DNA of 64,000 bases from the sequence record PV654397.1. One strand, written 5' to 3'. Position numbers and translations under genes: made by a program. Positions 8,084 to 64,000 of this stretch are shown in pieces; the first letter of the stretch is position 1; each line of letters begins with the position of its first letter. The notes beneath the pieces were generated by a model. It did no database searches, had not been told where the DNA came from, and saw only the letters and a list, made by a program, of their open reading frames with translations.

Positions 8084-8387
8084 ATTCTACTCCTTTGTAT
8101 ATAAATTTACCAATATCTTCGATGTATAAACAGATTCCACCTCGATCATTTAACACAAGCCAATCACCAAAACCACAACTGATGTTGCATATATTAAATT
8201 CTTCAATACCATCCGGTGAATACGCAATGAATGGACATATTTCATCTGATATACCATTTACATAGTTATTACATATTAAATCAAATGTATGTGAACTATA
8301 AGAATTATCAGTACTGAAAATGTGCATTAATGAACTAGATAGAATTACTATTGTTTTTTCCCACATTTTTAAAAAATCGTTATTCAC
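8058..8387 (-). CDS. hypothetical protein
   Basis: GTG start after GGAG SD; TGATATAAT upstream near 8420. Confidence 0.7.
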   Translation of the reverse strand: MNNDFLKMWEKTIVILSSSLMHIFSTDNSYSSHTFDLICNNYVNGISDEICPFIAYSPDGIEEFNICNISCGFGDWLVLNDRGGICLYIEDIGKFIYKGVEYVNNRSSY

Positions 8388-8444
8388 AACAACTACTCCA
8401 TGTCAGTGTTGTAATGAAATTATATCACCGAATCAAGATATGTC

Positions 8445-20219: not shown

Positions 20220-20765
20220 TTATAGACAGTTAAGTACTATGTCATCAAAAGTACTACTGTCAATGTTGTATTCATATAAAAATTTAAAATGTGATCCATA
20301 ACGCATCATCAGATTAAACTCTTCTTCAGTATTAAATTTGTAATCATGAAGAGTTTCAAGGGTACATGTTAAACCTAAAAACTCAATAATTTCTGATGTT
20401 ACATCATTTCCTGAATTGAAGTATTTAACCCAAACACATTTTCCTTGTGGGTTGAATTTTCTATATTCTCCTTCTAGTTCTCCATTGACGATATGTGCTT
20501 TCGCACTGATTAGATTATTACTATAACGCTCTTCGTAGTAGTTCCCATAACGAGCTTTAAGAATTGTAGGCTTCTTGGTTGGAAATAACTTAATGGAAGT
20601 TAATTCAAAACCGCACTGCAACTCTTTGATGTACGAAATACATCCCTTTTCTTTAATCACAACAAAACCAGTAAAATTCTCTTGGTCTTGGTTCTGATTG
20701 TCTGAATCAACAAATTCTAGTGTTTTATAAGTGACGCTTTTAGATTTTTTAATAAATGACATCAT
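20220..20765 (-). CDS. protein with MORN/YwqK-like repeat and family A-like C-terminal motif
   Basis: NGELEGEYRKFNPQGKCVWVKYFNSG; NTEEEFNLMM. Confidence 0.65.
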   Translation of the reverse strand: MMSFIKKSKSVTYKTLEFVDSDNQNQDQENFTGFVVIKEKGCISYIKELQCGFELTSIKLFPTKKPTILKARYGNYYEERYSNNLISAKAHIVNGELEGEYRKFNPQGKCVWVKYFNSGNDVTSEIIEFLGLTCTLETLHDYKFNTEEEFNLMMRYGSHFKFLYEYNIDSSTFDDIVLNCL

Positions 20766-20820
20766 TATTCCTATGGAAACATCAATGACTGTACATGGCG
20801 TTGACTGCATCAACACCAGT

Positions 20821-20851
20821 CGAATTATACACGCTTCGCATGTCTAATTCG
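20821..20851 (-). promoter_or_regulatory. hairpin with GCGAAGC loop and TATAAT in one arm
   Basis: CGAATTAGACATGC-GAA-GCGTGTATAATTCG. Confidence 0.6.
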
Positions 20852-21384
20852 ACGAAAGTACTATGATTTGTTTTAATTAATATTGACGGGGTTTGCTTGA
20901 GCATATTTCATCCCCCCGCAGGGGAAAGAACAAAAAAAAGTTTGACGCTGGTGGCCTTCACATAGTTCATATCACGAATTCTCTTACGAGGCGAAAGCGG
21001 GTTGCTCTGTTTCTCTCTATCGCGGTTCTTGTAGCAACGGTCGTCGGTCTTAAACATCCCGACACATAATACAAATACCATATGACCAGTACTTGTATTT
21101 GATTTCACGAATTTTGGACGCAACTATATTGTATAAATTACGACCGCAAATTTCTCATGAAATCTCCCTTAGATAATTGGTAAGGTGCGATCCTTATATG
21201 TCTATCGAGGAACTCTCTTTATCCTATTGGAGTTCTTTATACAGCCGCATTGCCGTGAGTGGTTCAAACTATGCCATCATCTAACGGGTTTCATTTGCTG
21301 TTCGTACTGAAAGGACTACTCATCTACCCTCTACTTTTCGAGTGGATTAGGCTTTAATCATTTCCATATGGAACCTTTCAGGAT
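20852..21384. ncRNA. putative large structured non-coding RNA or cis element (unclassified)
   Basis: GC-richer intergenic island with several perfect helices, no credible ORF. Confidence 0.45.
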
Positions 21385-21419
21385 TAAAAAAAGGCGACAA
21401 CATATTCTGCTGTCACCTT
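21385..21419 (-). terminator. intrinsic terminator
   Basis: AAGGTGACAGC-agaatat-GTTGTCGCCTT then T-run. Confidence 0.8.
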
Positions 21420-21421
21420 AC

Positions 21422-21449
21422 ATTATATCATAAACTTATGGTCTGTCTC
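21422..21449 (-). promoter_or_regulatory. extended -10 promoter directly upstream of terminator
   Basis: GAGACA-N16-TATAAT with TGA extension. Confidence 0.5.
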
Positions 21450-22296
21450 AGTTGTATTCTGTTTTTTCAGTGAAATTAGTTAAGATATCTGCACTTAAGC
21501 TTCTCATAACCTCAATCTTACTTGGCATGAACCTGTGCTTGTTTTTTACATACAACTCATCATCTTCAATGAAAGATGTGAACATGAATACCATATCTTC
21601 ACGTGGAATTGAGAGAATATTACAGTTTTCATTTTCAGCAACAGGGGAATCATTGTAGTACTTAGAGAATGCAGTACTTTGACGACCGATTATGATAGAA
21701 TTTCGGATTAGAAAATTACTACAGTACTGAAAATCTTTGTAGTACTTGTCAAGGATATATGGCATTATCGCTTCTTTCACTTCTTCATATCCATTGGTAC
21801 TATCAATTTCAGTACAATAATCTTCTCGGTCTTTTTTCCCTCGATGATTATCAAACTCGTACTCAAAGAATAAATTTTTATTTAATGAATCATTTGAACC
21901 AACTGATCCACTATAGTATGATTTTCTATCATTCATTCGATCATCGGGGCATGATGCATACATAGAAATGTCATGTGTTGACGTACCGATATAAATTTTC
22001 TTAGTAATGTGATTGTACGCGATGTAATCATAATCTTGTACTCCAGTGAGCATTAACTGGAACATCAATTCATCAGGAACATCAATTAACGGGTACTCAA
22101 ACTTCGAATATCTACTACGACAGAAATTCTTTTCAAATGCTCGATATGCGATGAAATCTTTTAGGTTTGTAATAGATTCATGCTCATGTGTACTACTGGT
22201 GCGTACATTGACATTAGTAGACGAGCAATACCCTTCAGATTCTTCTGCGTAGTCATAATAACCCTTATTGTAGTCAACGATTAGATAAAGTTTCAT
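21448..22296 (-). CDS. hypothetical protein
   Basis: 282-aa ORF, GGAG SD. Confidence 0.8.
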   Translation of the reverse strand: MKLYLIVDYNKGYYDYAEESEGYCSSTNVNVRTSSTHEHESITNLKDFIAYRAFEKNFCRSRYSKFEYPLIDVPDELMFQLMLTGVQDYDYIAYNHITKKIYIGTSTHDISMYASCPDDRMNDRKSYYSGSVGSNDSLNKNLFFEYEFDNHRGKKDREDYCTEIDSTNGYEEVKEAIMPYILDKYYKDFQYCSNFLIRNSIIIGRQSTAFSKYYNDSPVAENENCNILSIPREDMVFMFTSFIEDDELYVKNKHRFMPSKIEVMRSLSADILTNFTEKTEYN

Positions 22297-44109: not shown

Positions 44110-44268
44110 AAGGAGAACGTTTGCGGCGGGGTATTTTTTGTTTCAGGAAACATGANNNNNNNNNNNNNNNNNNNNNNNNNNNNNNNNNNNNNNNNNNNNN
44201 NNNNNACATGTTTTTCAGCGAAAATTTTTTTGACCCCCCCCTGCGGCCTGTGAAAACAAAACGTCTCT
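44110..44268. other. 50-N assembly gap (44156-44205) flanked by imperfect inverted repeat
   Basis: AAACATG left and CATGTTT right, GGCGGGGT versus ACCCCCCC.TGC, GAGAACGTTT versus AAACGTCTC. Confidence 0.7.
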
Positions 44269-60934: not shown

Positions 60935-60988
60935 GATAAAACTCCTTAATTTAGGAGGGAGAACCATTTCCCCCTCTCTATGTAAAAC

Positions 60989-61016
60989 ATTATACATGAA
61001 TCTAAGTACTATGCAA
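60989..61016 (-). promoter_or_regulatory. early promoter followed by leader hairpin
   Basis: TTGCAT-N16-TATAAT; AGTACT in spacer and upstream of -35. Confidence 0.8.
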
Positions 61017-61019
61017 GTA

Positions 61020-61355
61020 CTATTTCATTTTAATACCTGGATTCAGGTAACGGTGAGAGCCGTATTCTGGAGAGGTTTCGGTCCAGTACAGTAAATCGAT
61101 AGTCCCTTTAGCGTTAATCTTATCTACCAGCTTATTCATCTTAGCGTATACTACATCAGCATCGATGCGTTTAAAGCCAGTAGCTTTAGTGAAGTAGTAA
61201 TGATTTACTTCGCTATCGTTAAGGATATACCGAGAACCGTCAGCCGTTTGTGCGACAATGAATGAGAATGATACTTTACGATCAAGGCCGTCGCAGTATA
61301 CAGATGAATCATTGGTACGGATGAAAGCTTTAACGATATCGATTGAAGTACTCAT
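61020..61355 (-). CDS. early hypothetical protein
   Basis: 111 aa, AGGAG SD. Confidence 0.8.
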   Translation of the reverse strand: MSTSIDIVKAFIRTNDSSVYCDGLDRKVSFSFIVAQTADGSRYILNDSEVNHYYFTKATGFKRIDADVVYAKMNKLVDKINAKGTIDLLYWTETSPEYGSHRYLNPGIKMK

Positions 61356-61408
61356 GGTGAATCTCCTAACTTTGTGGGCCGTCGCACCGTTGCCGCCCTA
61401 CGAGATAC

Positions 61409-61437
61409 ATTATTGCAGTACTGATATACTTTGTCAA
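61409..61437 (-). promoter_or_regulatory. early promoter
   Basis: TTGACA-N17-AATAAT; AGTACT in spacer. Confidence 0.65.
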
Positions 61438-61546
61438 TACTTTTTTATTAATAGTTTTAGTTCCACCAGCAGATAGTTACTCACCGTTATTAACTATATA
61501 TTTTGGATACACCTATGCACCCTGTGGGCTAGTTTTTGTCTATGCG

Positions 61547-61588
61547 TATATAATAGCAAAGGGACTGACCGGAGTCAATCCCTTTTTT
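61547..61588 (-). repeat. terminator-promoter cassette, copy 1 (42-bp exact repeat)
   Basis: hairpin with UCCG loop carrying TTGACT-N17-TATTAT; identical at 63807-63848. Confidence 0.85.
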
Positions 61589-61601
61589 TATTCTTTTTTT
61601 G

Positions 61602-61802
61602 TTAGATGATTCTCCAATCATCAACGATCATGGTAAGATACCGAACCAGTGATTCGAGTGATTCGTGTTCTCGATAGTCTGCCGCTCCACCAGCGGTACA
61701 AGTACAGCCGATTAAGCCGTTTTGTAGTTCCTGGATCTTTACGTCGATCTGGTTGGCTTTAGCTTCTTTCAGTACTTCAACCAGGGCGATAGCGATAGAC
61801 AT
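61602..61802 (-). CDS. early hypothetical protein
   Basis: 66 aa, CxC, GGAG SD. Confidence 0.75.
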   Translation of the reverse strand: MSIAIALVEVLKEAKANQIDVKIQELQNGLIGCTCTAGGAADYREHESLESLVRYLTMIVDDWRII

Positions 61803-61857
61803 AATGTTTTACTCCAAACTATTGGCGGGAGAACTATTCCCCCGCTCTATGTAAAAC

Positions 61858-61885
61858 ATTATACATTACTGGTTAGTACTGTCAA
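61858..61885 (-). promoter_or_regulatory. early promoter followed by leader hairpin
   Basis: TTGACA-N16-TATAAT; AGTACT overlaps -35. Confidence 0.85.
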
Positions 61886-61892
61886 ATAGTTT

Positions 61893-62150
61893 TTATGAAA
61901 TATCTTCGATGTAGTCGGCCCATTTCATTTTTTCAGTACTGTCAATGGCTACCGGATTATTTGGATCAAACCATTCACCATCACCGCAATACATACCCAC
62001 GGCTACGGTTTTATAGCCATCCTGGGCCGTACACCACGACATTGCACGATAGATATGGCCTTTAACTGGTTGCAGTACTGGTAACGTTTTATGGTCTTCT
62101 ACGTAGGCCATAGCTTGAGGATTTACCCGATATTGTGTGAACTGATCCAT
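61893..62150 (-). CDS. early hypothetical protein
   Basis: 85 aa. Confidence 0.75.
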   Translation of the reverse strand: MDQFTQYRVNPQAMAYVEDHKTLPVLQPVKGHIYRAMSWCTAQDGYKTVAVGMYCGDGEWFDPNNPVAIDSTEKMKWADYIEDIS

Positions 62151-62178
62151 TATGTTTCCCCTTGTAGTTAGTAAAGTT

Positions 62179-62207
62179 ATTACATCAGTACTATCAAGCT
62201 ATGTCAA
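62179..62207 (-). promoter_or_regulatory. early promoter
   Basis: TTGACA-N17-TGTAAT; AGTACT in spacer and upstream. Confidence 0.7.
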
Positions 62208-62226
62208 TAGTACTGAAATAAAACTT

Positions 62227-62451
62227 TTAGATTAGATTATTGAGGCCGTCAATGGTAGACTCACTTTCTTCTTTCTCCCATTGTCGGTAGTACTTCCATG
62301 CTTCATGATAGGTGGCGATTAGTTCATCTTTTTGATCCTGGTTACATGCCAGTACTGAATCACGGTGAGCGGTGTTATAGATAGAATCGAATGATTTCTT
62401 CTCTTCTGCCAGGTTAGCTACTTCCCGCATCAGTTCATCAAAGTTAGCCAT
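62227..62451 (-). CDS. early hypothetical protein
   Basis: 74 aa, AGGAG SD. Confidence 0.75.
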   Translation of the reverse strand: MANFDELMREVANLAEEKKSFDSIYNTAHRDSVLACNQDQKDELIATYHEAWKYYRQWEKEESESTIDGLNNLI

Positions 62452-62498
62452 TTTATTACTCCTTTTAGTGGGGGAGGATATCTCCCCCTATGCAAAAC

Positions 62499-62526
62499 AT
62501 TATACTTTGTTTTAGTTATTATGCAA
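62499..62526 (-). promoter_or_regulatory. early promoter followed by leader hairpin
   Basis: AGTAC-TTGCAT-N16-TATAAT. Confidence 0.8.
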
Positions 62527-62782
62527 GTACTTTTTTCATATAAACATTAAATTCTACACCGCCGTAACCTTCCACGATGATATGTTTTGCGTTATCACGT
62601 TTGCACATAGTGAAACCGTTGTTGATATGTTCTGCATTTTCCAGGGCGACATCACCGATAGCGGCACATACGGCACTAATAACAGTATTCCGCAAAGTAC
62701 TGGTATCATTGGCGGTCATAGTAGTTTGCAGTACTACGTTGTCGTATACGTGTGCATTGATAGTGATTTCGATAGTGTTCAT
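62519..62782 (-). CDS. early hypothetical protein
   Basis: ATG 62782 after AGGAG. Confidence 0.75.
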   Translation of the reverse strand: MNTIEITINAHVYDNVVLQTTMTANDTSTLRNTVISAVCAAIGDVALENAEHINNGFTMCKRDNAKHIIVEGYGGVEFNVYMKKVLA

Positions 62783-62834
62783 GGTGTATCTCCTGGACTT
62801 GAGGGGAAACCATTTCCCCCTCTCGATATAAAAC

Positions 62835-62862
62835 ATTATACGTTAATCTAACTACAATGCAA
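62835..62862 (-). promoter_or_regulatory. early promoter followed by leader hairpin
   Basis: AGTAC-TTGCAT-N16-TATAAT. Confidence 0.8.
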
Positions 62863-62869
62863 GTACTTT

Positions 62870-63061
62870 TTAAATTTTATTTCCGATATAGTCCGGTCTA
62901 TTCTTTTCGGTCATACGCTTTGCTAATGTCTGCATATGGCTTATAGCGTTCAAGGTGTCTTCCTCCAGGGATGAATCAAGATAATCAGGATCATTCTTCA
63001 CCTTGCAATGATTATGATATCGTAGTACTGCCAGTACTTTTTTAACTTCTTCTACTGTCAT
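62870..63061 (-). CDS. early hypothetical protein
   Basis: 63 aa. Confidence 0.7.
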   Translation of the reverse strand: MTVEEVKKVLAVLRYHNHCKVKNDPDYLDSSLEEDTLNAISHMQTLAKRMTEKNRPDYIGNKI

Positions 63062-63330
63062 AATAAGTACCCCACTTCGTTAGCTTTCAGGTTAGTATCA
63101 ATCATCAGTGGATTTTTGTAGTTCACAAAACGATTAGTTTTTTCGATAGCAAATCCCATATAATCCAGCTTACTAACAGTACATTCATTCTTAAAAACTT
63201 CTTTCGCTGCATCGATTGCTGATTGCATGGATAACCGACCATCTAAATTAATGTTTCCAAATGATCCACCAGCAGAAGTAGGATTACCGTTCATATCTTT
63301 AATGATCATAGTAGCGGAGTAGCTAGACAT
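63058..63330 (-). CDS. early hypothetical protein
   Basis: 90 aa, AGGA SD. Confidence 0.75.
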   Translation of the reverse strand: MSSYSATMIIKDMNGNPTSAGGSFGNINLDGRLSMQSAIDAAKEVFKNECTVSKLDYMGFAIEKTNRFVNYKNPLMIDTNLKANEVGYLL

Positions 63331-63383
63331 AATTTTGTTTCCTTTTAGTATCGGGGAGAACTATTCTCCCCTTGATGTAAACT

Positions 63384-63411
63384 ATTATACAGTACTGGTA
63401 TACTTTGTCAA
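63384..63411 (-). promoter_or_regulatory. early promoter followed by leader hairpin
   Basis: TTGACA-N16-TATAAT; AGTACT in spacer. Confidence 0.85.
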
Positions 63412-63414
63412 TAC

Positions 63415-63636
63415 TTAATTACGGTTAAAATGATATGTGCCTTTATCATCCTGTACGCCCCATACTGATTTACCATCAACACCAGTGAAGCCGGATTGTA
63501 ATTCAATATGGAAACCATTATTATCAACTACAAAAACTTTTTTATTTTCATCCCGATAACATTGATATTCTGAATCAACATTAAAGGCCGCATCATTCAG
63601 TAGATTGGAAGCGTAAATGCAAGTCATTGTAGTCAT
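63415..63636 (-). CDS. early hypothetical protein
   Basis: 73 aa, AAGGA SD. Confidence 0.75.
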   Translation of the reverse strand: MTTMTCIYASNLLNDAAFNVDSEYQCYRDENKKVFVVDNNGFHIELQSGFTGVDGKSVWGVQDDKGTYHFNRN

Positions 63637-63687
63637 GATTTTATTCCTTATTGCCAGGGAGAACCGTTCCCCCTCTCGATATAAAAC

Positions 63688-63715
63688 ATTATACTTGATT
63701 CTAAGTACAATGCAA
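63688..63715 (-). promoter_or_regulatory. early promoter followed by leader hairpin
   Basis: AGTAC-TTGCAT-N16-TATAAT. Confidence 0.8.
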
Positions 63716-63806
63716 GTACTTTTTAAAAAATAGTTTTCAGTACTGAATACTTATATAATAGATACACTTCCGCACCCTATGGGTCAGTGAGTTATCTCTC
63801 AATGGA

Positions 63807-63848
63807 TATATAATAGCAAAGGGACTGACCGGAGTCAATCCCTTTTTT
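63807..63848 (-). repeat. terminator-promoter cassette, copy 2
   Basis: identical to 61547-61588. Confidence 0.85.
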
Positions 63849-63856
63849 AATCTTTT

Positions 63857-64000
63857 TTATCGTGTTACCTTACTTGCTGCCACATCACGCTTTTTATAGT
63901 ACTGATTCCAGATATTGCTGGTTAAACCGTAATCAAGTACTTTAATAAGTCCATTACGATCCTGGCCGATATTCTGTTTTCTGATATCTCTTATCGTTAG
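63857..64000 (-). CDS. C-terminal fragment of a Ser/Thr protein kinase-like gene (runs off window)
   Basis: RDIRKQNIG catalytic loop and KVLDYG (DFG equivalent); not in ORF track. Confidence 0.7.
   Translation of the reverse strand, partial: LTIRDIRKQNIGQDRNGLIKVLDYGLTSNIWNQYYKKRDVAASKVTR

Follow-up and report, generated by a model that had tools for sequence, protein, structure and literature searches.

Structured RNAs take several distinct roles in phages and mobile elements. In the ColE1 RNA II pre-primer, a promoter lies upstream of the site of action and the folding of a transcript of roughly 0.5 kb appears to decide RNA-DNA hybrid formation, with a G-run involved, while phage T4 typically relies on several origins per genome, including the R-loop origins oriF and oriG, and plasmids carrying such an origin can be amplified by the infecting phage. 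The large orphan RNAs of bacteria and phages (GOLLD, ROOL, OLE, HEARO, and raiA) span several hundred nucleotides with many covarying helices and pseudoknots, are associated with phages or mobile elements, and have an unknown biochemical role. tmRNA is a few hundred nucleotides long and has four pseudoknots; the packaging RNA (pRNA) of phi29 is a 174-nt structured RNA needed in multiple molecules; and HK022 put and lambda nut are antitermination RNAs of about 70 nt that act in cis at the head of long phage operons, in more than one copy per genome. In the jumbo phage PA5oct, RNA-seq revealed four unexplained intergenic transcripts of 236-619 nt (ncRNA001-004), two of which each make up 1-5% of phage reads (PMC7318152). 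Here, we describe a non-coding element of about 0.5 kb, most likely transcribed as a structured RNA, that RaK2-like jumbo phages carry in 3 to 5 copies and that a family of small integrative islands in enterobacterial chromosomes has also picked up.

The locus lies in a 64,000-nt stretch of sequence record PV654397.1 (hereafter, the window) that belongs to an Asteriusvirus jumbo coliphage and starts at base 299563 of Escherichia phage WPEC5. The 801 bases around the element are 100% identical to WPEC5 and 92-99% identical to other Asteriusvirus phages such as PBECO4, 121Q, and G17. The first and last approximately 21 kb of the WPEC5 record (1-21 kb and 360-381 kb) have identical ORF content, which fits the approximately 21-kb direct terminal repeats reported for fEgEco12 (PMC13070987), rendering a unique genome of about 360 kb. 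The gap at 20767-21447 is non-coding and GC-richer than its surroundings, with values of 0.42-0.445 at 20800-21099 against 0.32-0.35 in the flanks. Careful annotations (G17, Munch, and GAP32) leave it empty apart from a terminator, whereas WPEC5, WPEC3, and some other records place 4-7 tiny hypothetical CDSs in it, which are probably over-calls. Indeed, 80 of 92 indels between orthologues are not multiples of three, and variable sites are distributed 88/91/94 by codon phase. A 6-codon mini-ORF behind an SD-like AAGGGAG in the window copy is not conserved in other copies either. The features of the locus are collected in Table 1.

Table 1. Features of the element and of its surroundings, in window coordinates.
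Feature	Position	Strand	Description
Upstream gene	21448-22296	-	
-35-like box	21444-21449	-	GAGACA; overlaps the stop codon of the upstream gene
Extended -10 element	21422-21430	-	TGATATAAT; predicted start near 21415
Hairpin plus U-tract	21384-21419	-	Directly after the promoter; terminator of the upstream gene and 5' hairpin of the transcript; conserved, with compensatory changes, in the positional orthologues (P1 copies)
Core of the structured RNA	20884-21381	-	About 500 nt; one of 4 copies in this genome
Outer helix of the 5' domain	21307-21381	-	21307-11/21377-81 (in the initial annotation); encloses the variable terminal hairpin 21362-73 (in the initial annotation) and helix 21324-26/21348-50; crosses 21304-06/21317-19 (pseudoknot 4)
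Helix group	21198-21301	-	21241-45/21297-301, 21210-14/21231-35 (in the initial annotation) and 21198-200/21248-50; the first and third cross (pseudoknot 3); includes the conserved run CACGGCAAUGCGGC
Hairpin	21181-21196	-	21181-84/21193-96 (in the initial annotation)
Helix around a variable insertion	21101-21164	-	21101-04/21160-64; the invariant AAGGGA (21165-70) lies next to it
Hairpin with loop pairing	20966-21099	-	21068-74/21093-99 (in the initial annotation); its loop (21080-85) pairs with 20968-73, a 7-bp helix, 99.7% paired, with a paralogue-specific sequence (pseudoknot 1)
Crossing helices	20973-21063	-	20973-77/21020-24 and 21001-05/21034-38 (the latter in the initial annotation) cross (pseudoknot 2); plus 20980-82/20989-91 and 21043-45/21061-63
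Conserved 3' end	20884-20924	-	CCCC/GGGG hairpin (20911-24; in the initial annotation) with an invariant G6 run, then the CGUCA motif (a second CGUCA at 20942-46); followed by an AT-rich tract
3' extension	20767-20883	-	Two hairpins, then the RBS and ATG (20766) of the downstream gene; no terminator, so read-through into the hypothetical/Dam methylase/cytidylyltransferase operon is likely
Downstream gene	20220-20766	-	
Helix of the initial annotation, not supported	21038-44/21140-46		The 3' arm lies in an insertion that most copies lack
Annotated tiny CDSs	20782-21357		WPEC5 CDS0568-0571
Tandem paralogous small genes	36.8-43.9 kb and 49.1-59.9 kb		Several arrays of diverged genes (repeat families D1-D6, D8-D10, D12-D17), spaced about 210-480 nt
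Run of 50 N	44156-44205		Masked or a gap
Repeated unit	60953-63858		Repeat families D7, D11, D18: GC-rich hairpin, minus-strand TATAAT-type promoter with a TTGCAT -35, and the motif GTACT; recurs every 0.3-1.5 kb among small minus-strand genes

Comparison with the 4227 covariance models of Rfam 15, including those of RNase P, group I/II introns, hammerhead, GOLLD, ROOL, OLE, HEARO, 6S, and riboswitches, yielded no matches in the window at the gathering thresholds; the best sub-threshold hit was the L20 leader, with 17.8 bits against a threshold of 58.7 (E = 1.2). Nine other copies did not match any family either, while the SRP RNA in the E. coli locus described below scored as a positive control. 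A hammerhead-like CUGANGA was also discarded, because the Asteriusvirus copies have U where the essential C should be. ARAGORN found no tRNA or tmRNA gene in the 64 kb. We found no description of the element in the literature, although its presence in a 10,000-candidate catalogue of virus RNAs (PMC10690425) cannot be excluded.

BLAST searches revealed that the non-coding stretch itself is conserved at about 70% identity in Mimasvirus, Eneladusvirus, Salmonella phage Munch, Xanthomonas phages XbC2 and XaC1, and others, with 4 places per Asteriusvirus record and 5 in the other genera, a multicopy nature that the initial annotation had not noticed. In WPEC5, the copies lie at 71.5, 185.7, 270.1, and 320.4 kb, whereas Munch, GAP32, pEa_SNUABM_50, fHe-Yen9-04, CBB, XbC2, and XaC1 each have five full-length copies. 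A covariance model found three, perhaps four, copies in RaK2 and none in PA5oct, and a pattern scan of IMG/VR added copies from further jumbo-phage contigs, many of them genome-sized. All copies within a genome share one orientation and are evenly spaced. In GAP32, for instance, they sit at 35, 99, 178, 262, and 341 kb of 359 kb, and by our own calculation the chance that five random points on a circle leave no gap under 53 kb is about 0.005. A tree of 65 copies grouped them mainly by genome position across genera and not by genome, which indicates that these are old paralogues held in place (P1 to P5). The window copy is P1, next to the hypothetical/Dam methylase/cytidylyltransferase operon.

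We next assessed the helices by comparative analysis. Single-sequence folding energy was not better than that of shuffles (z = -1.69 on the minus strand and -0.20 on the plus strand), so that the finding would fail by the energy criterion set in the initial annotation and the case rests on covariation. A strand-neutral scan of 57 non-redundant copies (under 93% identity) recovered 14 credible helices with 61 pairs, of which 96.6% are canonical against 73.6% after shuffling (maximum 74.8 in 300 shuffles), and 53 pairs show compensatory double changes. Since these helices were chosen on the same alignment that was scored, we performed an independent check with a covariance model of the 5' half built from the RNAalifold consensus, to which 58 copies were realigned. 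This rendered 97.9% paired cells against 71.8% in shuffles (0 of 500 reach it), with compensatory changes in 20 of 24 pairs, whereas partners slid by 1-3 columns gave 29-44%. Most of the helices proposed in the initial annotation are thus real, as six of them were confirmed by compensatory changes, with all four Watson-Crick types represented in the terminal hairpin of the 5' domain. In contrast, the CCCC/GGGG hairpin is conserved but nearly invariant and gives no evidence either way, and one long-range helix is not supported (Table 1).

Four helix pairs interleave in ABAB order (Table 1; the first as 20966-72/21080-86 with 21068-74/21093-99). All of these are covarying, so the fold probably contains four pseudoknots. 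Long invariant single-stranded runs separate the helices, among them AAGGGA, GAUAGACAUAU, CACGGCAAUGCGGC, AACCCGU, and two CGUCA boxes. Interestingly, the 7-bp loop-strand pairing has a different sequence in different positional paralogues (for example UUCAUGU, CUGAAUU, AUUGUAU, and AUCGAAU), each version being conserved among orthologues across genera, like an address code; if the pairing were intermolecular, it would make each paralogue self-associate.

The initial annotation left the strand unresolved on the grounds of mixed wobble asymmetry, a remark that is correct: we counted 88 GT against 111 AC on the plus-strand reading of the strand-neutral helices and, by pair column, 17 favor minus and 10 favor plus, while some invariant G-T juxtapositions at helix ends would fit the plus strand. 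Such near symmetry is unusual for an RNA and keeps a both-strands or DNA-level reading alive. Promoter evidence, however, points to the minus strand. Nearly every copy has, 10-45 nt to the right in window coordinates, a sigma70-like minus-strand promoter consisting of a GRGACA or GAAAC box, about 14 nt, and TGnTATAAT or TATACT. In the window, the minus-strand promoter noted at 21422 in the initial annotation was confirmed, with 16 nt between GAGACA and a TATAAT preceded by TG. The strict motif occurs 18 times on the minus strand of WPEC5 and never on the plus strand, and it is therefore a normal promoter class of this phage; the repeated unit at the end of the window looks like an early-promoter/terminator cassette of a different promoter class. 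Two conserved TGACG boxes on the plus strand lack a conserved -10, as judged by eye, and were rejected as promoters. The minus strand also folds better in 28 of 41 copies. In P1 copies, the promoter sits just upstream of the terminator hairpin of the previous gene, an arrangement (21384-21451 in the window) conserved in other genera, and transcripts from it would begin inside or at the foot of the terminator stem. Assembled Logan contigs of RNA libraries lie on the element in four runs and, in one wastewater metatranscriptome, on nothing else within the 2.8 kb compared; this shows presence in RNA libraries but not transcription, strand, or ends, and DNA carry-over is possible. We take the RNA to be minus-strand, with good though not full confidence.

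Copies of the element are also found in bacterial chromosomes. Two of 5426 complete E. coli genomes hold a full-length copy with its promoter inside an integrase-bearing island of about 10 kb at ffs (NZ_AP027515.1, 3473-3484 kb; locus L224) that carries the candidate defense systems PDC-M45 and PDC-S16. In the 0.7-kb non-coding stretch after this copy, about 450 nt downstream of the element (L224 about 8330-8400, RNA orientation), there are three close repeats of TTATCGATCG-like units that could be iterons or operators and that we did not see in the phage copies. A scan of one genome per species found further copies in Citrobacter amalonaticus, Silvania hatchlandensis, Enterobacter chinensis, Enterobacteriaceae RIT714, two enterobacterial MAGs, and a 2.8-kb contig filed under a Clostridium MAG, while a plasmid collection gave no match. 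In most of the copies whose neighbors were identified, the element lies downstream of a tyrosine or large serine integrase and faces a CI-like S24 repressor, followed by a Cro-like gene. The E. chinensis island (locus L240, 10.6-20 kb, plus locus L241) is about 10.5 kb long, lies next to nadC, and has no virion genes.

A 286-aa orphan protein marks the same island in Enterobacter, Klebsiella, Raoultella, and Atlantibacter, and every member that we retrieved has the element with its promoter. Most of these islands, about 10 kb where both ends could be seen, share a backbone of integrase, the RNA element, a CI-like S24 repressor, a Cro-like HTH, the 286-aa orphan, a 138-aa LprI-like protein, and a DNA invertase, although the E. 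coli ffs island and the Citrobacter copy differ in gene content. The cargo is variable, namely Kiwa KwaA/KwaB, PDC-M45, PDC-S16, a UvrD-like helicase with an ADP-ribosylglycohydrolase-domain protein, or a PLD nuclease, and the family looks like a possible satellite or defense-island class. Island proteins next to the element have no RaK2-like phage homologues, so only the promoter-plus-RNA module was exchanged. On the tree, the chromosomal copies fall in two places, the P3 clade and a group with the five copies of phage XaC1 and a P3 copy from an uncultured jumbo phage.

Collectively, these data support with fair confidence a new family of conserved, covarying, promoter-driven elements that is most likely transcribed from the minus strand, in line with the novel phage RNA or structured origin proposed in the initial annotation. 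How it works is inference. Our leading yet tentative guess is that each copy is a replication-origin module of the ColE1 RNA II or T4 oriF/oriG kind, in which the promoter fires and the folded transcript, with its invariant G-run and the AT-rich tract after it, controls formation of an RNA-DNA hybrid that primes phage DNA synthesis, and that the islands carry one copy so that an infecting jumbo phage amplifies, and perhaps packages, them. Even spacing, positional persistence of diverged paralogues, orientation kept even where the flanking genes are inverted, the G6 run followed by a GC dip to about 0.24, and adoption as the only phage-like part of the islands fit this reading best. On the other hand, four pseudoknots and long invariant loops are far more elaborate than any known primer RNA, the dip spans about 30 nt and is shallow for a 35% GC genome, GC skew follows gene strand with no break at the copies, and no initiator protein is linked to the element. 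If the element is an origin module, it would give the first handle on how RaK2-like phages start replication. It is conceivable, though less likely than not, that the element is the replication-origin RNA module of these phages, or another essential cis or RNP RNA of theirs, and that the integrase/CI-Cro/invertase islands of Enterobacter, Klebsiella, Citrobacter, and E. coli carrying a single copy beside defense cargo (Kiwa, PDC-M45, and others) are a new class of jumbo-phage satellites that use this one borrowed module to be amplified or mobilized by, or to interfere with, the infecting giant phage.

Close behind, and likewise only possible, is a trans-acting RNA (an RNP scaffold, ribozyme, aptamer or sponge, or a decoy) made from several paralogous genes and needed for phage development, host takeover, or anti-defense, with the island copies as mimics that hijack or poison that function. 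The fold is as intricate as those of ribozymes and large orphan RNAs, the gene has its own promoter and moves as a self-contained module between unrelated mobile elements, the GAP32 P3 copy stands alone before convergent genes, and RNA-library contigs favor the element over its flanks. This reading, however, explains neither the even spacing nor why five diverged paralogues each stay at their own position across genera; no partner protein gene is linked, and there is no terminator after the window copy. Were it correct, the element would be a new RNP or ribozyme candidate with a built-in natural competitor.

A cis-acting 5' leader, either a put/nut-like processive antitermination element or a giant regulatory leader at the head of each long transcription domain, is doubtful. 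The absence of a terminator before the downstream gene in the window, the co-directionality of all four WPEC5 copies with the genes that follow, the many intrinsic terminators annotated between genes in relatives, and the even spacing would fit it, but the GAP32 P3 copy and the island copies run into convergent genes, and the same promoter class drives many genes that have no such leader. Slightly less likely still is a DNA-level element whose single strands or cruciforms fold without being used as RNA, such as a single-strand initiation or recombination site or a binding array. Helices are almost purely Watson-Crick with G-T and A-C about equally rare, as selection on both strands would give, and the P3 copy lies beside the gp46/47 and endonuclease VII genes; yet a conserved promoter is aimed into nearly every copy, pseudoknot-type crossings are hard to form in duplex DNA, and the element is present in RNA libraries. 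A conserved spacer with chance palindromes or small unannotated genes, despite the unremarkable single-sequence z-scores and the four tiny CDSs called in WPEC5, is contradicted by the compensatory changes, far above shuffles and slid controls, by the DNA identity across phage genera, and by the lack of a codon signature.

Large, intricately folded RNAs without a known job are rare, and past examples have led to new biochemistry; this one is conserved across several genera of 350-kb phages that are being isolated for therapy, and it is the only thing these phages share with a widespread family of islands carrying defense genes. The PA5oct ncRNAs show no homology to this family by BLAST, nhmmer, or covariance model, and none to each other. 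Unlike tmRNA, the element has no tRNA-like end detectable by ARAGORN and no conserved tag reading frame. The paralogue-specific loop pairing recalls the loop-loop code of phi29 pRNA, but pRNA comes from a single gene and is known only in phi29-like podoviruses, there is no sequence relation, and the pairing here is complementary within each copy. HK022 put and lambda nut are about 70 nt against about 500 nt, and some copies here face convergent genes. With respect to GOLLD, ROOL, OLE, HEARO, and raiA, none of their Rfam models matches even at E up to 10, and this family has 3-5 diverged copies per genome at fixed positions and is restricted to RaK2-like jumbo phages and one family of enterobacterial islands. 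Finally, this family shows a promoter, a 0.5-kb fold, a G6 run, and then an AT-rich tract, but there is no sequence or Rfam relation to ColE1 RNA II or the T4 origins, the known primer RNAs have no pseudoknots or long invariant loops, and the T4 origins are not homologous to each other, whereas the copies described here are paralogues.
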